Shown here: positions 3,261-64,000 of the stretch, one piece after another | Numbering within the stretch: position 1 is the stretch's first letter | Layout: each line of letters starts with the position of its first letter | Origin: Malacoraja senta | Lineage: Eukaryota | Direction: 5' to 3' | NCBI GenBank assembly: GCA_038087875.1 | Contig: JAXLNO010005073.1 | Coordinates: forward strand, 186,001 to 250,000 | Length of the DNA stretch: 64,000 nucleotides | The notes under the pieces: generated by a model | Databases searched by the model: none | Seen by the model: only the letters and a program-made list of their open reading frames with translations | Told to the model about the DNA's origin: nothing | Position numbers and translations under genes: made by a program

Positions 3261-3619
3261 TTACATCAGCCAGATTCAATTTCAGTTGTGATAAGTTTAG
3301 GGTATCATCACTTTAGTAAAGATACATCCTTTTATTCTGACACTGTGCCCTCTGGTGCGAGACTCTCCCGCTAGTAGAAACATCCTTTTAGTTCGGAGAT
3401 ACAGCACAGAATCAGCACAATTCCAGTTGCACCAGAAAAAAATAATCATTAAAAACCCGGGACACTTCAAATTACAACAATTGAAAGGAAAAGTCAACAG
3501 AATTAATCAAAGAAGCAAACACAATTCCGTAGAGAGCGATAGTGTTCTCACCAACCTCATGCCCTGGAGATGTTGATCCACATTAGACACAAGGGGAGAC
3601 TCCCTGTCTCTACCCTGAG

Positions 3620-4503
3620 CACTGCTCCCATCCACAGCCCAGAACCACTGCTCCCATCCACAGCCCAGGACCACACCTCCCATCCACAGCCCAGGACCAC
3701 TGCTCCCATCCACAGCCCAGGACCACTGCTCCCATCCACAGCCCAGGACCACTGCTCCGATCCACAGCCCAGGACCACTGCTCCCATCCACAGCCCAGGA
3801 CCACTGCTCCCATCCACAGCCCAGGACCACTGCTCCCATCCACAGCCCATGACCACTGCTCCCATCCACAGCCCAGGACCACTGCTCCCATCCACAGCCC
3901 AGGACCACTGCTCCCATCCACAGCCCAGGACCACTGCTCCCATCCACAGCCCAGGACCACTGCTCCCATCCACAGCCCAGGACCACTGCTCCGATCCACA
4001 GCCCAGGACCACTGCACCCATCCACAACCCAGGACCACTGCTCCCATCCACAGCCCAGGACCACTGCTTCCATCCACAGCCCAGGACCACTGCTCCCATC
4101 CACAGCCCAGGACGACTGCTCCCATCCACAGCCCAGGACCACTGCTCCCATCCACAGCCCAGGACCACTGCTCCCATCCACAGCCCAGGACCACTGCTCC
4201 CATCCACAGCCCAGGACCACTGCTCCCATCCACAGCCCAGGACCACTGCTCCCATCCACAGCCCAGGACCACTGCTCCCATCCACAGCCCAGGACCACTG
4301 CTCCCATCCACAGCCTAGGACCACTGCTCCCATCCACAGCCCAGGACCACTGCTCCCATCCACAGCCCAGGACCACTGCTCCCATCCACAGCCCAGGACC
4401 ACTGCTTCCATCCACAGCCCAGGACCACTGCTCCCATCCATAGCCTAGGACCACTGCTCCCATCCACAACCCAGGACCACTGCTCCCATCCACAGCCCAG
4501 GAC
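3620..4503. repeat. 26-bp minisatellite CACTGCTCCCATCCACAGCCCAGGAC, about 34 copies
   Basis: Direct tandem repetition; 26-aa periodicity of the spurious ORFs equals 3 units. Confidence 0.97.
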
Positions 4504-4533
4504 AACTGCACTCAGACACTCCCACAACTCCCC

Positions 4534-10929: not shown

Positions 10930-12570
10930 AGTGATGACCAGCCGCTCCATTCTCTCAGCATATGACAGTCCCGTCATCCCGGGAATTAACCTTGTAAACC
11001 TACGCTGCACTCCCTCAATAGCAAGAATGTCCTTCCTCATATTAGGGGACCAAAACTGCACACAATACTCCAGGTGTGGTCTCACTAGGGCTCTGTACAA
11101 ATGCAGAAGGACCTCTTTGCTCCTATATTCGATTCTTCTTGTTATAAAGGCCAACATGCTATTCGCTTTCTTCACTGCCTGCTGTACCTGCATGCTTACT
11201 TTCATAGCCTGATGAACAAGGACCCCCAGATCCCGTTGTACTTCTCCTTTTCGCAACTTGACACCATTTAGATAGCAATCTCCCTTCCTGTTTTTGCTAC
11301 CAAAGTGGATAACCTCACATTTATCCGCATTAAACTTCATCTGCCATGCATCTGCCCACTCCCCCAACCTGTCCAAGTCACCCTGCATTCTCATTGCATC
11401 CTCCTCACAGTTTACACTGCCACCCAGCTTTGTGTCATCTGCAAATTTGCTAATGTTACTTTGAATCTCTTCATCCAAATCATTGATGTATATTGTAAAT
11501 AGCTGCGGAACCAGACCGAGCCTTGCCGTACCCCAGTAGTCACTGCCTGCCATTCTGAAAGGGACCCATTAATCCCTACTCTTTGTTTCCTGTCGGCCAA
11601 TCACTTCTCTATCCATGTCAGCACTCTACCCCCAATACCATTTGCCCTAATTTTGCCCACTAATCTCCTATGTGGGACCTTATCAAATGCTTTGTGAAAG
11701 TCCAGGTACACTACATCCACTGGCTCTCCCTTGTCCATTTTCCTAGTTGCATCTTAAAAAAATTCCAGAAGATTGGTCAAGCATGACTTCCCCTTCGTAT
11801 ATCCATGCTAACTCAGACCGATCCTGTTACTGCTATCCAAATGTGCGGCTATTTCATATTTTATAATTGACTCCAGCGTCTTCCCCACCGCCGATGTCAG
11901 GCTAACTGGTCTATAATTCCCTGTTTTCTCTCTCGCTCCTTTCTTGATAAGTGGGATGACATTAGCTATCCTCCAATCCACAGGAACTGATCCTGAATCT
12001 ATTGAACATTGGAAAATGATCACCAATGCGTCCACTATTTCTAGACCCACCTCCATGAGGACCTTGGGATGCAGACCATCAGGCCCAGGGGATTTATCAT
12101 CCTTCAGTCTCATTAGACTACCCAATACTATTTCTCGCCTAATGAACATTTCTTTCAGTTCCTCTACCCCCTTAGATCCTCTGTCCTCCAGTATTTCTGG
12201 GAGATTGTTTGAGTCTTCCTTAGTGAAGACAGATCGGAAGTACCTATTCAACTCTTCTGCCATTTCCTTGTTGCCCATAATAATTTCACCCACATCTGCC
12301 TTCAAGGGACCCACATTTGACTTTGCTACTCTTTTTCCCTTAACATATCTAAAGAAGCTTTTACTGTCCTTCTTTATATTCCTGGCCAGCTTCCCTTCGT
12401 ACTTCATCTTTTCAGCCCGTATTGCCCGTTTTGTTTCCTTCTGTTGTCCTATGAAAGTTTCCCAATCCTCTGGCTTCCGGCTACTCTTTGCTGTGTTGTA
12501 CAACTTGTCTTTTAGTTTTATTATATCCCTAACTTCTCTTGTCAGCCACGCTTGCCTCCCACTCCCCTTA
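10930..12570 (-). mobile_element. CR1 LINE ORF2 (RT) fragment, frameshifted
   Basis: ORFs 11808-12503 and 10804-11553 with [38 protein letters not shown]. Confidence 0.92.
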
Positions 12571-13134
12571 GTTGTGAAAAAATCAGGAAGGAAAACAGCC
12601 CAGAGATCAAAATAGACGAATCATTGTGGTTGAATTGCATAAAAGCTCTTAATGCAGCCTTAACCATTGCTCTGAATTTTGCTTTAGGTCCTGAATGTGA
12701 TATGAGTTTGTATGTTGGTTGCACCAAGCTTCAGTGCGTCCCTCAGCACGTTTTCCTGCAGTCTGGAGTGGGTCAAGTGGCAACATTCCCTGATGGACCA
12801 CACGTTGACAGATCGTTGCTTCATTCCTCAGCACAGTAACAGTGTGTGGGAGATGGGACAATGTTCCTGTCCTTATAATACAGCCTTTGACCCACAGTGA
12901 GCAGCACCAGAACAGAAGTATTGCAATTAAAGTTTTATCTTTAGAAACAAGAGACACTTCCTCAATCTTACATTTAATGGCCTTAGCATTGAAGGCAAGC
13001 ATACCATACGCCTTCTTCACTACCCTAACTACTTGTGCTGCCACTTTCCGTGAGCTATTAACGTGGACTCCAAATGCACTGAAGATATGTGTCTCAAACT
13101 GGCTCAGTCTAAAATTCTATGTTATTTCCCACAG

Positions 13135-13208
13135 GGAATCCACAAAATGAGGCCCAGGTTTTTCTGCAGCAGTTTGCCAGCTGGTTTGATGTTCGGTGTC
13201 TTTGTTTT
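13135..13208 (+). pseudogene. Relic leader exon of a paralog of the Ig receptor gene, truncated by an LTR
   Basis: Acceptor TTATTTCCCACAG at 13134, ATG 13147, MRPRFFCSSLPAGLMFGVFVF matches MRSRFLCSSLPLGLMFGFFVF at 22340. Confidence 0.75.
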
Positions 13209-22330: not shown

Positions 22331-22427
22331 ATGCACAAAATGAGGTCGAGGTTTCTCTGCAGCAGTTTGCCACTTGGTTTGATGTTCGGTTTCTTTGTTT
22401 TCCTGCTTCGACCTGTTTCCACACAGA
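22331..22427 (+). CDS. Leader (signal peptide) exon MHKMRSRFLCSSLPLGLMFGFFVFLLRPVSTQ
   Basis: Acceptor TTATTTCCAAACAG at 22327, hydrophobic core, phase-1 donor A/GTAAGT. Confidence 0.85.
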
Positions 22428-22559
22428 GTAAGTGCTTTCTCTACGCCGGTCACAATCACCTTGCATTAATTATCATTGTCCGTGTAAACCCGCACCCATT
22501 GTCAATCTCGCTTTCCTCTCCACGTCCCTGAATGTGCTGCTGCCTCACAAATCCACGCC

Positions 22560-26063: not shown

Positions 26064-26333
26064 TTGAGGCAAGTCCACAGAGGCCTCTGCTGGGCAGTGA
26101 CGTCACACTCAGCTGCACCATCTCCAGACTCTCAGATACAGTCAGTCTTCACTGGAGACCCATGGACTCATCCCAGCAGAACAGGAGCGACACTGATCAG
26201 ATCCGCCTGGATAACACGGTCTATCTGATGGTTCAACACGTTACAGTGGGGGATGGGAAGCTGTATGTGTGTGATGTGCAGGAAAACGGAAACATTGTTC
26301 ACACAAGTAATGGAGATTTTACTGTAGTCAACG
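26064..26333 (+). CDS. Ig domain D2, C2-type
   Basis: TTTTTCACAG acceptor, G/GTGAGT donor; VTLSC..LHW..LYVC. Confidence 0.9.
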
Positions 26334-26970
26334 GTGAGTGTAAACACCTCCCATTGGATATCAAGTAGACACTTGTATCACGGTGCTTCTTGTAATATTA
26401 TGTGTGTGCCCTGTGAAGAATTGTGGCATTCAGCTGGGAGCAGGACCCGGGAACAGGGAAGAACAGGGAATCAATGGGTGTGAATGGGAGAGGGATGGTG
26501 GGAATAATGGGAATGAAGGGACGGGAAGACCCGACCTACTTGAAGTGCGAACCTGTCCGGGTCAGTCCCCACGCAGGCATCCTCTGGGCTGCTTCTGTCC
26601 GCAGCCTGAACCTGCACCACCTCTTGCAGACAAACTGACAGAGACATTCACCTCCCAGACCGCTCTCGGGAGTCTCCGGGAGGTTTCATTCCATCCCGGG
26701 AGATTCCCGGACAGTCCGGGTGTGGGGGCGAACCTAATGTTGAAATGTAGAGTGGAATATCCAAACTTCACTGCAATTTACTGCCGTACAGGACATTGTA
26801 TTTTATAAAGATCTGATGAGTTTAGTGCGGCATTCATGAAAGATGTTACATTTGAAACTTGATCAGCTGAACAAAACACCACGAATGTTTATAAGAATAC
26901 GGTTGAGAATCTCTGTATGGCACGGTAACTGTAATACTGAAAGGAGTTATCCTCTGTCTCTCTGATACAG

Positions 26971-27312
26971 ATTTATATAGGGAGATATACACACTTTACC
27001 GCTCCAGCACAGATCACAGTTAACTTCACCTGGTTTGTTCTGTGAGTTATGGTGATAGCTATTCCCGTGCTGAGTGGACCTGGACACCTCGTCGCCTTCA
27101 ACAACACAAAGAAATAGCATCTGCAGAACGTTCTCAGCCCATCAATGTCAAAGGGACCGACTTCAGGAATCGACTGGTGAGCTCAGGGAAACCCTTCGAT
27201 GGCGAGGATTTCAGTGTGAGGATTGTCCCCGTTGTGTTTCAAGATGCCGGAGTTTACGCATGTTTTCTGGAATCATATCCATTTCTCACCATTGATCTAA
27301 TCACAGTGAAAG
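26971..27312 (+). CDS. Ig domain D3, V-type, with premature TAA at 27021-27023
   Basis: TGATACAG acceptor, G/GTAGGA donor; LVC..EWTW..FSVRI..DAGVYAC; paralog has CAA (Gln) at the stop position. Confidence 0.85.
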
Positions 27313-27390
27313 GTAGGAGACAGAATGTTGCCACTGAGTTTACTGATGAACTTATTGTTTAAAATGTAAACAACCTGCTTGTTTCCACAG

Positions 27391-27651
27391 TCACAGCTGA
27401 ACCGTCTGATGCAGTGACTGAGGGAGACACCGTTACCCTGACCTGCACTGTGTCTCACGTCACTGGGTCAATGAGACTGGTTTGGATCAATGGCGATGGC
27501 AAAAGTGTTGGAGAAAAGACACTGACTGTGGAAGAGAAATCACAGAGTCTGGTTATTCAGAAAGCTGAGAGAGGCAGAAGGAACTGGAGATGTGGTTTGT
27601 TTCATCAAGACCTGCCCCGGCTTGTTGTCCCGTACTATCAGGAGCCCCGTG
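27391..27651 (+). CDS. Ig domain D4, C2-type with WxC
   Basis: TTTCCACAG acceptor after a 78-bp intron, G/GTAAGT donor; VTLTC..LVW..NWRC. Confidence 0.9.
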
Positions 27652-37148: not shown

Positions 37149-37256
37149 GGAATCACCATTTTATAATCAGATTTGTTGTAATTATCGGGGGTCTGGCTGT
37201 TCTCATCATCATTATACTGGCAGTGGAGTTCTGTCAAAGAAAGCGCAAGCCTACAG
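37149..37256 (+). CDS. Transmembrane exon RNHHFIIRFVVIIGGLAVLIIIILAVEFCQRKRKPT
   Basis: TTTTGACAG acceptor, G/GTAAAG donor, hydrophobic stretch followed by Cys and basic stop-transfer. Confidence 0.88.
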
Positions 37257-39901: not shown

Positions 39902-40128
39902 TGTAGCGGAAACTGCTGGCGCACATAGATATCGAACCCAGCGTTGGGAAGCTGCGGTCACGTGACTCGGGAGGGGCTGCTGTTTTCGTGCGGTTTCGTT
40001 TTGGCACCACAGTTGTTTTGCTGACCACCGTTGTGATCAGACGTGTATGCAGAGACCTTTTTGCTAAGGATCGAGTGTTCAATAAAAACCGTTCAGAAAA
40101 CGTAGTCGTGGTTTCTGCATCCGTTAAA
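39902..40128 (+). mobile_element. Solo LTR, 227 bp, with 4-bp TSD ATGG
   Basis: TGTAGCGG...CCGTTA(A)A termini, AATAAA at 40081, ATGG at 39898-901 and 40129-132. Confidence 0.7.
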
Positions 40129-40288
40129 ATGGGTGAATTGCAGGCACATGGGTCTAGCTTGGATGGGGCAACTTGGATGGTATAGACTAGTTGAGCCAAA
40201 GGACATGGTTCTGTGCTGTATGACTCTATGACTCTTTGACTTTATAAAAAGGTGATAACAATTTAAATTGTGCCCTCTCTCTAAACAG

Positions 40289-40387
40289 GTTTGGGCAATC
40301 AAAGACAGACAGCTCCACCATCAAAAAGAAACACAGAAAGTGAATCTCAACTTTAAGGCAACCTTGAAGAAATTCAGCAGATGGCAG
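40289..40387 (+). CDS. Candidate cytoplasmic-tail exon GLGNQRQTAPPSKRNTESESQL*GNLEEIQQMA
   Basis: Pyrimidine-rich CCCTCTCTCTAAACAG acceptor, phase 1 compatible; TAA at 40354-56; cut by LTR at 40389. Confidence 0.5.
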
Positions 40388-40877
40388 GTGTAGTGGCCAT
40401 TTGGCCTGTTTTACATGTCATTGATGATGGCATGTGCCTTTAAATTTTAGACTGCCCGTTGTATTGTGGGTGGGATTTATGACGTGTTTTTGGGCGTGTT
40501 TGGAACTTAGATGCTTGCGCAGAAGTCTAGTTTTTAGATTAGTTTGGAGAGACGATGGAGAAGGTCAATCCTTCGACCATGTCAATGTTACGGAGACACG
40601 AGGAGTTTTGTAATGTTTAAAGTTGCAAGTTGGGATTGAAGGAAGATTGCAGTAACGAGTCGGGAGAAACTTGGATGTATCTTGCTGTTTACCATCAACA
40701 ATAACGCATTTATTCAACAAAAGACTGCGTGTTGAAGCTTTATGAGTGAAGAAGCTCTGAAGGTGTCTGAGGAAGCTTGCATGCGTATCGAAGATATTCC
40801 CCTTATCCATTCTCATCCAAATAGCTGCTTGAGAATTTGTTTCTCAAAAGATAAGAAAAATCTGCCGTTACAATAAC

Positions 40878-41102
40878 TCGAAGGGAACCCCCGACAGGGG
40901 GATTAAATACTAGTCCCAGAGAGTGGGACAGAAGATTAAATCAAAGGGAACCTCCGGCAGGGGGGTTAAGTACTAGTCCCAGAGAGTGGGACAGAAGATT
41001 AAATCGAAGGGAACCTCCGGCAGGGGGGTTAAATACTAGTCCCAGAGAGTGGGACAGAAGATTAAATCAAAGGGAACCTCCGGCTGGGGGGTTAAATACT
41101 AG
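40878..41102. repeat. 63-bp tandem repeat, 3.5 copies, directly after the 5' LTR
   Basis: TAGTCCCAGAGAGTGGGAC at 40911, 40974, 41037. Confidence 0.9.
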
Positions 41103-43353
41103 AAAGGGACATTGAGGGTGGTCTTTGACTGTGCTGCAGTCTTTAAAGGTACATCGCTTAACAGTGAACTACTGCAAGGTCCAGACCTTATCAACCCACT
41201 CATTGGAGTTCTCATCAAATTTAAGCAAGAACCGATTGCTTTAATGGCTGACATCAGATCGATGTTTCATCAAGTGAAAGTAGCTGGTGAACACATTAAT
41301 TACCTGCGATTCTTATTGTGGCCTGAAGGGGATGTGCAGCAAGATCTTGTTGATTACCGATTGAAAGTACATCTCTTTGGAGCCGTGTCATCTCCAAGTT
41401 GTGCGAACTTCGCTTTAAGGAAGACCGCAGAGGATAATAAAGAGTATTTGCCAGAGGAGGTAATTTCCACTTTGAAAAATAATTTCTACGTGGACGATTG
41501 CCTAAAATCCATATCTACTGAGCAGAAAGCAATTCAAATGGTAAAACACCAGACCTCTCTCTGCAATAAGGGAGGATTTGTACTTTCCAAGTGGATCAGC
41601 AACAATCGTGTTGTATTGGAAAGCATTCCACCAGATGACAGAGCTGAAGAAACCAAGGAGTTGGATTTAGTTAAAGACAATTTGCCAATGGAAAGGGCAC
41701 TGGGACTGCACTGGTGCATGGAGACGGATGTGTTTAAGTTTAAATTGTCGATTCAGGAGCGACCATGTACAAGAAGGGGTATCTTTTCTGTGATTGGCTC
41801 AGTATACGACCCTTTGAGAATTCTTGCACCATTTACACTGCCAGCCAAGTTAATTTTACAAAACCTTTGTAAGGAAAAACTTGGATGGGATGAGAGTATA
41901 ACTCAAACATCCTCGCACCGTTGGCCAGAATGGTTAACGGACTCCATCAAATTTCAAAGTTTAAGGTGGATCGGTGCATAAAGCCTAAAAACTTTGGTAA
42001 GATCAGAAGTGCACAATTGCATCATTTTTCGGATGTCAGTGAAAGTGGTTACAGGACTGTTTCATATTAAAGACTGCAAAATGTTAGCAAAAGAGTGCAT
42101 GTTGCATTCTTAATGAGAAAAGCCAGAGTGGCACCACTGAAACAAATGACGATTCCCAGAATGGAACTTACAGCAGCAGTCTTAGCTGTTAAAATTGACA
42201 TAATGCTGCAAAAGGAACTACAATTTCAACTGGAAGAATCTATCTTCTGGACCGATAGCACTACGGTTCTGAAATACATCAATAATGAAAACAAACGCTT
42301 TATGACATTTGTAGCAAATAGAGTCTCCTTTGTATTGGGAGCTACTAATGTTTCTCAATGGAGATATGTTAGCACCAAAGAAAATCCTGCGGATGAAGCC
42401 TCTAGAGGACTAACAGCAAATTGTTTTCTAAACAACAGGAGATGGATCAATGTGCCCAAGTTTCTTTGTGAACAAAGCAGAGAATGGCCAAAGCTTGAAC
42501 TCGGATATGAAATCTCTGTAAATGATCCGGAAATTAAACAAAACATTTCGGTGATTGTGATTGCTAAAGACTCATATGACACCGTGAACAATTTAATTAC
42601 CCACTTTTCATCATGGAATAAATTGATAACTTCTTAAGATAAATTGATAATTGTTCTTAAAATAAAAACAAGATTATTGCTGGCGGCTCGAGAAAGGAGA
42701 CAAATTACAGAGTATCCTGGGAGAGAATCCTGATAAACGGAAAGGAGAGATTGAAGGCCAGATGCAAGTTTTTGAAGCTTCATATGACGTACAGGATTTA
42801 CGTCTTGATGATGTCCTCAAGGCGGAAAATGCGATCATCTCTTTCTGTCAAAGACAGAAATACAAAGAAGAAATATTAACATTGGAAGCTGGAGGACAGG
42901 GGGTAAAAAGAAACAGTCAATTGTACAAGCTCGACCCAGTCTGGGAGGAAGGTCTTCTGCGGATGGGTGGTCGCCTAAACAAATTGGCAATGCCCGTAAA
43001 AACTAAACATCCTATCATTCTCTCAAAGGACTTTTACATAACGACATTATTTTTACGACATATTCATGAACAAGTTAGACATGGAGGAAGAAATTATATG
43101 TTGTCCCAACTTGGTAACAAATATTGGGTTATCAAGGCTGATTCTGCAGCATCACGAGGTTCTTGGTTGATGGGAAGAATACTAGAAATCATGCCTCACG
43201 TTCGGGGTTTGGTGCGTATGGTACGTCTTAAAACAAAAAACTATGTTTTAATAAGATCAATAACCAAGTTGTGTTTGCTTCTAGAAGGCGAAGGTGATGA
43301 TGGAAGAGTCGATGAAGGGCCATGATTGCGGATATATAGTGCATGCTATTTTT

Positions 43354-43428: not shown

Positions 43429-43795
43429 CAGGGTTTAATTCCCTGACCTTTTGCTTTTGATATATGTATAGCCTTTATGGCCATTTTTTAAATGTTTATT
43501 AGTAATTGCCTCGTTAGATACTCGGAACAATTAGGAGCCGGTATGTAGTGGCCATTTGGCCTGTTTTGCATGTCACTGATGATGGCATGTGCCTTTAAAT
43601 TTTAGACTGCCCGTTGTATTGTGGGTGGGATTTATGACGTGTTTTTAGGCGTGTTTGGAGCTTAGATGCTTGCGCAGGTCTAGTTTTTAGATTAGTTTGG
43701 AGAGACGATGGAGAAGGTCAATCCTTCAACCATGTCAATGTTACGGAGACACGAGGAGTTGTGTAATGTTTAAAGTTGCAAGTTGGAATTGAAGG

Positions 43796-46700
43796 GACTC
43801 AAATAGAGAATGCTATTAGACAGTGTGTGAGGCAGGAGGCAGAGAAGGAAAGCACTCAGACCCAACATGTAGGGGGGAAAGAAGAAAACAATAATAAACA
43901 GAGAATAAGAGGTGGTGGGGTTCTTAAACGGGTGAGCAGAGAAACAGAGGGGTGTAAAATGCGGGCGGAAGCAATAGGTAGCAAGGTGAAAAGTAAAAGT
44001 GGCAGGCAGACAAATCCACGGCAAAAATCAAAAAGAGCCACTTTTCAACATCATTGTATAAGGGGTAAGAGCGTTGTAAAAACAAGCCTGAAGGCTTTGT
44101 GTCTCAATGCAAGGAGCATTCGTAATAAGGTGGATCAGTTGAACGTGCAGATAGCAATTAATGATTATGATATAGTTGGGATCACGGAGACATGGCTCCA
44201 GGGTGACCAAGGCTAGGAGCTGAACATCCAGGGATATTCAATATTTAGGAGGGATAGAGAGAAAGGAAAAGGAGGTGGGGTAGCGTTGCTGGTTAGAGAG
44301 GAGATTAACGCAGTGGAAAGGAAGGACATTAGCTTGGAGGATGTGGAATCGGTATGTGTAGAGCTGCGAAACACTAAGGGGCAGAAAACGCTGGTGGGTG
44401 TTGTGTACAGGCCACCTAGCAGTAGTAGTTAAGTTGGGGATGGCATCAAACAGGAAATTAGAAATGCGTGCAACAAAGGCAAAACAGTTATAATGGGTGA
44501 CTTCAATCTACATATAGATTGGGTGAATCAAATTGGCAGGGGTGCTGAGGAAGAGGATTTCTTGGAATGTATGAGGGATAGTTATCTAAACCAACATGTA
44601 GAGGAACCAACGAGAGAGCAGGCTATTCTAGACTGGGTATTGAGTAATGAGGAAGGGTTAGTTAGCAGACTTGTTGTGCGTGCCCCCTTGGGCAAGAGTG
44701 ACCATAATATGGTTGAGTTCTTCATTAGGATGGAGAGTGACATTGTTAATTCAGAAACAACGGTTCTGAACTTAAAGAAAGGTAACTTTGAGGGTATGAG
44801 ACGTGAATTGGCCAAGATTGACTGGCAATTCGTTCTAAAAGGGTTGACGGTGGACATGCAATGGAAGGCATTTAAAGACTGCATGGATGAACTACAAAAA
44901 TTGTTCATCCCAGTTTGGCAAAAGAATAAATCAGGGAAGGTAGTGCATCTGTGGATAACAAGGGAAATCAGGGATAGTATCAAAGCAAAAGATGATGCGT
45001 ACAAATTAGCCAGAAAAAGCAGCATACCAGAGGACTGGGAGAAATTCAGAGACCAGCAGAGGAGGACAAAGGGCTTAATTAGGAAAGGGGAAATAGATTA
45101 TGAAAGGAAACTGGCAGGGAACATAAAAACTGACTGCAAAAGTTTTTATAGATATGTGAAGAGAAAGAGATTAGTTAAAACAAATGTAGGTCCCTTGCAG
45201 TCATAAACAGGTGAATTGATCATGGGGAACAAGGATATGGCGGACCAATTGAATAACTACTTTGGTTCCGTCTTCACTAAGGAAGACATAAATAATCTGC
45301 CGGAAATAGCAGGGGGCCGCGGGTCAAAGGAGATGGAGGAACTGAGTGAAATCCAGGTTAGTCGGGAAGTGGTGTTGGGTAAATTGAATGGATTAAAGGC
45401 CGATAAATCACCAGGGCCAGATAGGCTGCATCCCAGAGTACTTAAGGAAGTAGCTCCAGAAATAGTGGATGCATTAGTGATAATTTTTCAAAACTCTTTA
45501 GATTCTGGAGTAGATCCTGAGGATTGGAGGGTAACAAACGTAACCCCACTTTTTAAGAAGCGAGGGAGAGAGAAAACGGGGAATTACAGACCAGTTAGTC
45601 TAACATCGGTAGTGGGGAAACTGCTAGAGTCAGTTATTAAAGATGGGATAGCAGCACATTTGGAAAGTGGTGAAATCATTGGACAAAGTCAGCATGGATT
45701 TACGAAAGGTAAATCGTGTCTGACGAATCTTATAGAATTTTTCGAGGATGTAACTAGTAGAGTGGATAGGGGAGAACCAGTGGATGTGTTGTATCTGGAC
45801 TTTCAGAAGGCTTTCGACAAGGTACCACATAAGAGATTAGGATACAAACTTAAATCACACGGTATTGGGGGTTCAGTATTGATGTGGATAGAGAACTGGC
45901 TGGCAAACAGGAAGCAAAGAGTAGGAGCAAACGGGTCCTTTTCACAATGGCAGGCAGTGACTAGTGGGGTACCGCAAGGCTCAGTGCTGGGACCCCAGCT
46001 ATTTACAATTTATATTAATGATCTCGACGAGGGAATTGAAAGCAACATCTCCAAGTTTGCGGATGACACGAAGCTGGGGGGCAGTGTTAGCTGTGAGGAG
46101 GATGCTAGGAGACTGCAAGGTGACTTGGATAGGCTGGGTGAGTGGGCAAATGTTTGGCAGATGCAGTATAATGTGGATAAATGTGAGGTTATCCACTTTG
46201 GTGGCAAAAACGGGAAGGCAGACTATTATCTATATGGTGGCCGATTAGGAAATGGGGAGATGCAGCGAGACCTGGGTGTCATGGTACACCAGTCATTGAA
46301 AGTAGGCATGCAGGTGCAGCAGGCAGTGAAGAAAGCGAATGGTATGTTGGCCTTCATAGCAAGAGGATTTGAGTATAGGAGCAGGGAGGTTCTACTGCAG
46401 TTGTGCAGGGCCTTGGTGAGACCACACCTGGAGTATTGCGTACAGTTTTGGTCTCCAAATCTGAGGAAGGACATTATAGCCATAGAGGGAGTGCAGAGAA
46501 GGTTCACCAGACTGATTCCTGGGATGTCAGGACTTTCATATGAAGAAAGACTGGATAGACTTGGCTTATACTCGCTAGAATTTAGGAGATTGAGAGGGGA
46601 TCTTATAGAAACGTACAACATTCTTATGGGGATGGACAGGCTACATGCAGGAAGATTGTTCCCGATGTTGGGGAAGTCCAGGACAAGGGGTCACAGCTTA

Positions 46701-46995
46701 AGGATAAGGGGGAAAACCTTTAAGACCGAGATGAGGAAAAACGTTTTCACACAGAGAGTGGTGAATCTCTGGAACTCTCTGCCACAGAGGGTAGTTGAGG
46801 CCAGTTCATTGGCTATATTTAAGAGGGAGTTAGATGTGGCCCTTGTGGCTAAAGGGATCAGGGGGTATGGAGAGAAGGCAGGTATGGGATACTGAGTTGG
46901 ATGATCAGCCATGATCATATTGAATGGCGGTGCAGGCTCGAAGGACCGAATGGCCTACTCCTGCACCTATTTTCTTTGTATCTATGTATCTATGT
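43796..46995 (+). mobile_element. CR1 LINE, 5' truncated, ORF2 (APE-RT) with stops, nested in the BEL 3' LTR
   Basis: LCLNARSIRNK, GDFN, YLDFQKAFD, FADD; (CTATGTAT)n tail; LTR resumes at 46996. Confidence 0.95.
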
Positions 46996-47210
46996 ATTGC
47001 AGTAACGAGTCGGGAAGAAACTTGGATGTATCTTGCTGTTTACCATCAACAATAAATCATTTATTCAACAAAAGACTGTGTTGAAGCTTTATGAGTGAAG
47101 AAGCTCTGAAGGTCACTGAGGAAGCTTGCATGTGTTCCCCTCATCCATTCTCATCCAAATAGCGGCTAGAGAACTCGTTTCTCAAAAGATAAGAAAAATC
47201 TGCCGCTACA

Positions 47211-47535
47211 CCGATGTTGGGTGAGTCCAGAACCAGGGGCCACTGTTTAAGAATAAGGGGTAAGCCATTTAGAACGGAGACGATGAAACACTTTTTCTCA
47301 CAGAGAATTGTGAATATGTGGAATTCTCTGCCTCAGAGGGCGGTGGAGGCAGGTTCACTGGATGCTTTCAAGAGAGAGCAAGATAGGACTCTTAAAGATA
47401 GCGGATTCAGGGCATATGGGGAGAAGGCAGGAATGGGGTACTGATTGGGAATGATCAGCGATGATCACATTGAATGGCGGTGCTGGATCGAAGGGCCGAA
47501 TGGCCTACTCCTGCACCTATTGTCTATTGTCTATT
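47211..47535 (+). mobile_element. CR1 3' fragment
   Basis: MLGESRTRGH..FFSQRIVNMWNSLP; (CTATTGT)n tail. Confidence 0.85.
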
Positions 47536-47539
47536 GTAG

Positions 47540-52775: not shown

Positions 52776-53369
52776 GCCTCTACTTCCTGAGAAGATTACC
52801 GAGAGTCGGTTTGTCAAGGAGGACTCTCTCTAACTTCTACAGGTGCACAGTAGAGAGCATGCTGACCTGTTGCATCGTGGCTTGGTTCAGCAACTTGAGC
52901 GCCCTGGAGAGGAAAACACTACAAAAATTAGTAAACACAGCCCAGTCCATCATCGGCTCTGACCTTCCTTCCATCGAGGGGATCTATCGCAGTCGCTGCC
53001 TCAAAAAGGCTGGCAGCATCATCAAGGACCCACACCATCCTGGCCACACACTCATCTCCCCACTACCTTCAGGTAGAAGGTACAGGAGCCTGAAGACTGC
53101 AACATCCATGTCAGGAATAGCTACTTCCCCACAGCCATCTGACTATTAAACTTGGCTCGGACAAAACTCTGAACATTAATAGCTCATTATATGTTATTTG
53201 TACTTCATCAGTTTATTTATTCATGTGTGTATATATTTATATAATGGTATATGGACACACTGATCTGTTTTGTAGTCAATGCCTACTATGTTCTGTTGTG
53301 CTGAAGCAAAGCAAGAATGTCATTGTCCTATCAGGGACACATGACAATAAACTCACTTGAACTTGAACT
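52776..53369 (+). mobile_element. Rex1/Babar 3' fragment, paralog of 451-1032
   Basis: Same junctions on both sides as the left block. Confidence 0.85.
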
Positions 53370-61870: not shown

Positions 61871-62239
61871 TTCTACATTTTACATCAGCCAGATTCAATT
61901 TCAGTTGTGATAAGGTTAGGGTATCATCACTTTAGTAAAGATACATCCTTTTATTCTGACACTGTGCCCTCTGGTCCGAGACTCTCCCGCTAGTAGAAAC
62001 ATCCTTTTAGTTCGGAGATACAGCACAGAATCAGCACAATTCCAGTTGCACCAGAAAAAAATCATCATTAAAAACCCTGGACACTTCAAATGACAACAAT
62101 TGAAAGGAAAAGTCAGCAGAATTAATCAAAGAAGCAAACACAATTCAGTAGAGAGCGATGGTGTTCTCACCGACCTCATGCCCTGGAGATGTAGATCTAC
62201 ATCAGACACAAGGGGAGACTCCCTGTCTCTACACTGAGC

Positions 62240-63829
62240 ACTGCTCCCATCCACAGCCCAGGACCACTGCTCCCATCCACAGCCCAGGACCACTGCTCCC
62301 ATCCACAGCCCAGGACCACACCTCCCATCCACAGCCCAGGACCACTGCTCCCATCCACAGCCCAGGACCACTGCTCCCATCCACAGCCCAGGACCACTGC
62401 TCCCATCCACAACCCAGGACCACTGCTCCCATCCACAGCCCAGGATCACTGCTCCCATCCACAGCCCAGGACCACTGCTCCCATCCACAGCCCAGGACCA
62501 CTGCTCCCATCCACAGCCCAGGACCACTGCTCCCATCCACAGCCCAGGAGCACTGCTCCCACCCACAGCCCAGGACCACTGCTCCCATCCACAGCCCAGG
62601 ACCACTGCTCCCATCCACAGCCCAGGTCCACTGCTCCCATCCACAGCCCAGGACCACTGCTCCCATCCACAGCCCAGGACCACTGCTCCCATCCACAACC
62701 CAGGACCACTGCTCCCATCCACAGCCCAGGATCACTGCTCCCATCCACAGCCCAGGACCACTGCTCCCATCCACAGCCCAGGACCACTGCTCCCATCCAC
62801 AGCCCAGGACCACTGCTCCCATCCACAGCCCAGGAGCACTGCTCCCACCCACAGCCCAGGACCACTGCTCCCATCCACAGCCCAGGACCACTGCTCCCAT
62901 CCACAGCCCAGGTCCACTGCTCCCATCCACAGCCCAGGACCACTGCTCCCATCCACAGCCCAGGACCACTGCTCCCATCCACAGCCCAGGACCACTGCTC
63001 CCATCCACAGCCCAGGACCACTGCTCCCATCCACAGCCCAGGACCACTGCTCCCATCCACAGCCCAGGACCACTGCTCCCATCCACAGCCCAGGACCACT
63101 GCTCCCATCCACAGCCCAGGACCACTGCTCCCATCCACAGCCCAGGACCACTGCTCCCATCCACAGCCCAGGACCACTGCTCTCATCCACAGCCCAGGAC
63201 CACTGCTCCCATCCACAGCCCAGGACCACTGCTCCCATCCACAGCCCAGGACCACTGCTCCCAACCACAGCCCAGGACCACTGCTCCCATCCACAGCCCA
63301 GGACCACTGCTCCCATCCACAGCCCATGACCACTGCTCCCATCCACAGCCCAGGACCACTGCTCCCATCCACAGCCCAGGACCACTGCTCCCATCCAGAG
63401 CCCAGGACCACTGCTCCCATCCACAGCCCAGGACCACTGCTCCCATCCACAGCCCAGGACCACTGCTCCCATCCACAGCCCAGGACCACTGCTCCCATCC
63501 ACAGCCCAGGACCACTGCTCCCATCCACAGCCCAGGACCACTGCTCCCATCCACAGCCTAGGACCACTGCTCCCATCCACAGCCCAGGACCACTGCTCCC
63601 ATCCACAGCCCAGGACCACTGCTCCCATCCACAGCCCAGGACCACTGCTTCCATCCACAGCCCAGGACCACTGCTCCCATCCATAGCCCAGGACCACTGC
63701 TCCCATCCACAGCCCAGGACCACTGCTCCCATCCACAGCCCAGGACCACTGCTCCTCACGACAGCCCAGGACCACTGCTCCCATCCACAGCCCATGACCA
63801 CTGCTCCCATCCACAGCCCAGGACCACTG
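62240..63829. repeat. 26-bp minisatellite, about 61 copies, paralog of 3620-4503
   Basis: Same unit, same flanks, same CACACCTCC variant unit near the left end. Confidence 0.97.
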
Positions 63830-64000
63830 CACTCAGACACTCCCACAACTCCCCCTTTTATACACAGCAGCTGACAATTTTCTAATCAGCTTCAAACAAG
63901 CTGATTACCACATTAACCCTTCGCCCACCAGTGGTCAATCAATGTTTGTTGCACACATCATGATATCCACCTGGGGCAGTAGTTGTCTGCAGGACAATAA

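Follow-up and report, generated by a model that had tools for sequence, protein, structure and literature searches.

The window, by which we mean the whole stretch of 64,000 nucleotides of Malacoraja senta DNA that was analysed, contains a receptor gene with eight immunoglobulin (Ig) exons arranged in two modules, a transmembrane (TM) exon and a first cytoplasmic exon, directly followed by a retroelement of the BEL/Pao type. Coordinates are collected in Table 1. In the second module all four Ig exons have open frames, as does the TM exon, and the splice sites are intact. Judged from its sequence, the gene is a skate receptor copy of the eight-Ig, CD4/LAG-3-like type and one of a tandem set.

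Table 1. Features of the receptor gene copy and of the adjoining retroelement (positions in the window)
Feature	Position	Strand	Description
Second nonsense codon (TAA), D3 exon of first Ig module	27021-27023	+	Glu in relatives; GAA in both Amblyraja copies
Transmembrane exon	37149-37256	+	Phase 1 in, phase 1 out; ends ..FIIRFVVIIGGLAVLIIIILAVEFCQRKRKPT-G
First cytoplasmic (tail) exon	40289-40387	+	99 nt, phase 1; homologous to the L-Y-(S/A)-N exon of relatives
TAA stop at the conserved-Tyr position	40354-40356	+	TAT in Rhinoraja L004 and Leucoraja L002
Splice donor GT	40388-40389	+	Host G followed by the first LTR base, T, which may also be host (2-nt overlap); CAG/GTGTAG versus ancestral CAG/GTGATG
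5' LTR, BEL/Pao	40389-40872	+	TG..CA, 484 nt; same orientation as the gene
63-nt tandem repeats	40874-41102	+	About 3.6 copies, each with ATTAAA
BEL/Pao pol remnants	41112-43325	+	RT, Pao peptidase_A17 domain, DUF5641
3' LTR	43544-47210	+	Two parts (43544-43795 and 47013-47210), split by a nested CR1-type LINE (43796-47012)
CR1 3' end	47211-47537	+	5'-truncated; abuts the 3' LTR

Relatives were gathered from 1.8 billion representative proteins, using the neighbouring D4' Ig exon and then an eight-Ig Mobula relative as queries. They form a large set of NCBI entries from sharks and rays named "uncharacterized protein," including Rhinoraja longicauda LOC144591061 (P0206), Leucoraja erinacea LOC129701489 (P0158) and Amblyraja radiata LOC116978408 (P0180), with further members in Mobula, Pristis, Heptranchias and Scyliorhinus. 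The family is tandem and multicopy (loci L001, L003 and L005), and its closest relative to the window copy is the Rhinoraja gene (locus L004). A literature search for an elasmobranch family of multi-Ig ITIM receptors found no paper.

Sequence at one end of the window recurs at the other (451-920 and 52776-53257; 3507-4511 and 62126-63874, including a G/C-skewed satellite), which suggests a tandem segmental unit of approximately 52 to 58 kb with one receptor gene each. Separately, a second leader-like open reading frame at 13130-13200 (..MRPRFFCSSLPAGLMFGVFVF..) is similar to the signal peptide located near 22340-22430 and may be a remnant of the first exon of another copy.

The first cytoplasmic exon and its stop codon

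The tail exon called in the first-pass annotation proved to be real: tblastn matches, exon length, phase and acceptor identify it as the homologous first cytoplasmic exon behind the TM exon. The TM exon itself was matched by the tails of P0048, P0034, P0009 and P0206 and, as in the homologous elasmobranch multi-Ig ITIM receptors, has no mid-membrane Lys. The tail of P0206 matched the window at 40285-40392 with 72% identity (E = 7e-11), and that of P0011 also matched the tail exon (E = 8e-5). Its acceptor AG lies at 40287-88, preceded by ..tctctctaaacAG, and the frame is open from the first base of the exon. Exon length, phase and acceptor are identical in the window, in Rhinoraja L004 (11410-11508) and in the Leucoraja erinacea paralogue L002 (21253-21351). 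Joined in phase 1, the TM and tail exons read ..CQRKRKPT-G-LGNQRQTAPPSKRNTESESQL-TAA-GNLEEIQQMA-G.

An origin of this exon from a CR1 element was also considered, given that the peptide behind the stop faintly resembles the end of CR1 ORF2 and that the 3' flank of the BEL element is a CR1 tail. It was ruled out, as nucleotide alignment with three CR1 copies scored no better than shuffled sequences.

Not every copy of the gene carries the exon. The closest paralogues, Amblyraja radiata L001 and L003, match the window up to 37712 and lack tail exon 1, so that the Tyr codon cannot be read there, while the three distal tail exons are present. At both loci (15519-16568 in L001 and 21977-23036 in L003) the TM exon is followed directly by an exon encoding E-Y-M-S; in the models P0048 and P0034, the reading continues past the TM donor or a different exon is used. 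Leucoraja L005 was rejected as a counterpart of the tail exon; it is another copy, 83 to 92% identical, and also lacks tail exon 1.

Among the proteins retrieved, 45 relatives have a segment that aligns gap-free to the window tail exon. It had been proposed that the in-frame TAA stands in place of an ancestral tyrosine, and the alignment of tail exons bears this out. The codon is TAT in both L004 and L002, Tyr occupies the position in 39 of the 45 relatives (Val, Asp and Leu in two each of the remainder), and all but three of the relatives continue for at least 67 residues past it. The change from Tyr to stop amounts to one transversion (TAT to TAA). Since 2 of the 21 one-step nonsense paths in the Leucoraja tail exon fall at the Tyr codon, a random stop would strike it about 1 time in 10, a mild coincidence. 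Behind the stop, the window reads TAA-GGC-AAC-CTT-GAA-GAA versus TAT-GCC-AAC-CCT-GAC-AAA in Rhinoraja, with five changes clustered right after the stop.

Could the TAA have arisen in assembly or sequencing, or represent a rare allele of a gene that truly has Tyr? A search of sequencing runs for the locus found no RNA run that contains it. Four runs (X1, X2, X3 and X5) yielded short DNA-like contigs over introns and, among those listed, none contains the 37256>40289 joint or extends across the stop site at 40339-40388. The contigs from X1 and X2 (window 40126-40338) both end at 40338, 5' of the TAA, and show 3 differences from the window in 154 nt (40246, 40256 and 40283); a different haplotype, a paralogue or a related species may be their source. 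These observations leave some room for an error or a rare allele, but a genuine lesion agrees with the five further substitutions relative to Rhinoraja in the next five codons, with the second TAA elsewhere in the gene, with the inserted LTR and with the loss of the 3' exons. We therefore consider such an error very improbable, and a single wrong base would leave the verdict on the gene unchanged.

The BEL/Pao element and the 3' part of the gene

Matches of the internal open reading frames to Pfam Peptidase_A17 (E = 1e-12), RVT_1 and DUF5641 assign the element at the splice donor to BEL/Pao. Its two LTRs are 95.8% identical. No gag was seen between the RT and the 5' LTR, suggesting that an internal segment has been deleted. 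The 63-nt repeats immediately follow the 5' LTR and occupy the place expected for a primer-binding site and gag. No target-site duplication was found around the element; the 5' flank is ..GCAGG and the 3' flank, CCGAT.., belongs to the CR1 fragment.

The first-pass annotation had described the tail exon as cut by this insertion. Instead, the exon is complete to its last base, as in relatives (..ATG-GCA-G/GTG), and the LTR begins at intron position +2. Because the host GTG and the LTR TG overlap by two bases, the insertion is placed at intron positions +2 to +4. A GT donor was re-created by the LTR and is no worse than the ancestral one. The plus strand of the 5' LTR contains neither AATAAA nor ATTAAA; downstream of the stop, ATTAAA first occurs at 40902, 40935, 40998 and 41061, in the 63-nt repeats inside the element.

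Between 28206 and 40390, the window and Rhinoraja L004 are collinear at 83 to 91% nucleotide identity, through all four Ig exons of module 2, the TM exon and the tail exon. This collinearity stops exactly at the LTR. In the relatives, the tail continues on later exons encoding E-Y-M-S-V, I-H-Y-G-S-I and (V/I)-I-Y-A-Q-I. Leucoraja L002 has at least four tail exons (21253, 22373, 39148 and 42904), and Rhinoraja L004 has, besides a last exon, tail exons at 11408, 13396 and 15128. In the last 23 kb of the window there is neither the intron of the collinear Rhinoraja gene, no continuation of which was found beyond BEL and CR1, nor its three further tail exons (E-Y-M-S-V, I-H-Y-G-S-I and I-I-Y-A-Q-I). 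Searches of the interval from 40.4 to 64 kb with tails from five species (fifteen relatives and P0206) and with L001 and L004 DNA detected no downstream tail exon. The missing exons could lie beyond the end of the window. Alternatively, a deletion or a recombination event involving two BEL copies may have eliminated the 3' part; either would in addition explain the absent target-site duplication.

These later exons bear on what the receptor once did. At least two canonical ITIMs follow the Tyr in 38 of the 45 relatives, which upholds the proposal of an ancestrally inhibitory receptor. The accompanying idea that its signalling motif resided in the tail exon does not hold; the main ITIMs were never there but in the later exons, which are absent from the window.

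Identity of the tyrosine motif

The cytoplasmic motif of LAG-3 is (F/Y)xxL(D/E), often (F/Y)PAL(D/E), and the LAG-3 tail behind the TM exon is encoded by a single exon (Takizawa et al., PMC10768021). The first-pass annotation had assigned the window exon to this type. According to its reading, a LAG-3-type, ITIM-like (Y)xxL(E) was lost at its Tyr, turning an inhibitory receptor into a signalling-null one with an mRNA that may now end in the LTR. The stop does replace an ancestral Tyr, the string after it fits xxLE, and the best solved-structure match of the ectodomain is LAG-3 D3-D4. However, the consensus among relatives is (Q/H/N)-L-Y-(S/A)-N-x-(N/H..)-E-(I/M/V). At the homologous position, Y-x-N occurs in 35 of the 45 relatives and (F/Y)xxL(D/E) in none, and the window itself fits the latter only with its stop read as Tyr. 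Since the Rhinoraja exon encodes Y-A-N-P-D-K, the Leu (CCT to CTT) and the Glu (GAC to GAA) are derived in the window copy. In addition, the relatives' tail is spread over at least four exons, as opposed to the single exon of LAG-3, with the real ITIMs on exons other than this one. The absence of a canonical poly(A) hexamer from the plus strand of the LTR and the second nonsense codon in D3 also count against this reading. When an intact relative was aligned with human LAG-3 using HMMER, its Tyr did not align with the LAG-3 motif, in what is a low-confidence region of the alignment.

Taken as a whole, the LAG-3-type reading has a very small probability, and by sequence comparison the resemblance to the LAG-3 motif is a coincidence that stems from later substitutions. 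The LAG-3 motif is thus unusable for classifying the genes of elasmobranch multi-Ig ITIM receptors.

By established SH2 specificities, pY-x-N is a Grb2-type SH2 site. In intact relatives the Tyr probably serves as such a docking site beside SHP-recruiting ITIMs, as in CD22-type tails.

State of the gene copy and comparison with known receptors

Besides the stop at the Tyr, the copy carries a nonsense codon in the D3 exon of its first Ig module (..STDHS-stop-LHLVC). Across module 2, the TM exon and the tail exon, dN/dS versus Rhinoraja was 0.78, and exon identity (approximately 90%) was hardly above that of the introns (83 to 91%). A value below 1 leaves room for some remaining constraint. For the module-1 exons (window 26066-27647), dN/dS versus the two Amblyraja copies was 2 to 3, based on only 5 to 8 synonymous changes, which are too few to interpret.

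Because of the TAA at the Tyr, the TAA in D3, the BEL element at the donor and the absent 3' exons, we consider it likely that the window copy is a decaying pseudogene of an unnamed elasmobranch inhibitory receptor family, with the Tyr lost to a stop. The change from Tyr to stop would then be a neutral lesion and not a selected loss of signalling. The suggestion that loss of the inhibitory motif was aimed exactly at the tyrosine finds no backing in a gene that has a second nonsense codon and has lost its 3' part, and in which a random stop falls on the Tyr about once in ten.

The alternative of a working short-tail decoy or co-receptor was weighed against the same data. Such a protein would be expressed in the membrane with a 29-residue tail and would bind ligand without signalling, similarly to the ITIM-less forms annotated in Mobula. 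Open frames and intact splice sites in module 2, the TM exon and tail exon 1, the dN/dS of 0.78, the re-created donor and the ending of Mobula P0177 and P0178 at tail exon 1 are all in keeping with it. However, the nonsense codon in D3 lies upstream of all of these parts and would truncate the protein or trigger decay, and no leader exon was seen before module 2, which makes a working short-tail receptor unlikely. We regard as quite improbable, too, that the copy is still transcribed into an ITIM-less receptor with a 29-residue tail or into a module-2 product, as a decoy created by the nonsense codon at the first tail Tyr, with its transcript ended by the sense-oriented BEL element. If that were true, the short-tail members of Mobula would represent a parallel case, and the locus would provide a snapshot of how paired-receptor families make nonsignalling members.

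Several members of the family differ in their tails or in their length. The annotated eight-Ig Mobula proteins P0177 and P0178 end at or just after tail exon 1 and have a Tyr two residues upstream (..ESYCLSNLQEIQQM); the family may thus naturally include short-tail forms devoid of ITIMs. Nine members (P0003, P0007, P0008, P0013, P0015, P0017, P0026, P0027 and P0033) share the same D4 domain, carry a Lys in the membrane span (..GYLLVKL..) and have short tails without Tyr motifs, a sequence pattern that suggests an activating/inhibitory paired family. The models P0001, P0162 and P0163 (Scyliorhinus, Mustelus and Heptranchias) are 1,400 to 1,720 residues long and combine the same tail with about 16 Ig domains. 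Repeated multiplication of the four-domain module would seem to account for them, unless these models fuse neighbouring genes.

On its own, the lesion in the window is ordinary damage to a tandem immune-receptor gene copy that is probably dead. Used as a marker, it leads to the tail architecture of a large unnamed receptor family of sharks and rays, which combines CD4/LAG-3-like Ig modules, grouped by four, eight or more, with a multiexon tail of a conserved L-Y-(S/A)-N plus two ITIMs, and whose sister genes have short tails and a Lys within the membrane span. The locus also offers a dated example of gene death through nonsense codons, an LTR insertion and the loss of 3' exons.

The nearest known set of genes is this unnamed family itself. 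The window copy shares with it the Ig modules, the TM exon and tail exon 1, including exon length, phase and acceptor; it differs from the family by the stop in place of Tyr, the nonsense codon in D3 and the BEL element at the donor, and by the absence of the exons for E-Y-M-S-V, I-H-Y-x-S-I and (V/I)-I-Y-A-Q-I.

Among solved structures, the best matches of P0158 in the PDB were LAG-3 chains (E = 1.7e-7 over D3-D4), a value that reflects similarity only. The family resembles LAG-3 and CD4 in its Ig modules of the V-C2-V-C2 type and in its phase-1 exon structure. However, LAG-3 has four Ig domains and, as a rule, one gene per haploid genome, located beside CD4, whereas the window family has eight Ig domains and consists of tandem multiple genes. 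Its tail is encoded on at least four exons with classical ITIMs and, in the 45 relatives, without (F/Y)xxL(D/E). It also has no Cx(C/H) motif.

CD22/Siglec-type and fish ITIM receptors combine ITIMs with one pY-x-N Grb2 site. At the level of motifs only, the family tail is similar to CD22/Siglec-type tails, being spread over several exons with one Tyr motif each, namely, I-H-Y-A-S-V and V-I-Y-x-x-I ITIMs and a Y-S-N-(V/I/A) site. The same set of motifs is found in the teleost matches P0014, P0019, P0020 and P0025. The ectodomain of the family, in contrast, is CD4/LAG-3-like and not Siglec-like. With the paired clusters of KIR, LILR, CHIR and NITR, the family shares the arrangement in tandem copies, some of them inhibitory and some with a TM Lys and a short tail. 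Dead copies with nonsense codons and transposon insertions, frequent in clusters of this type, are a further point in common.
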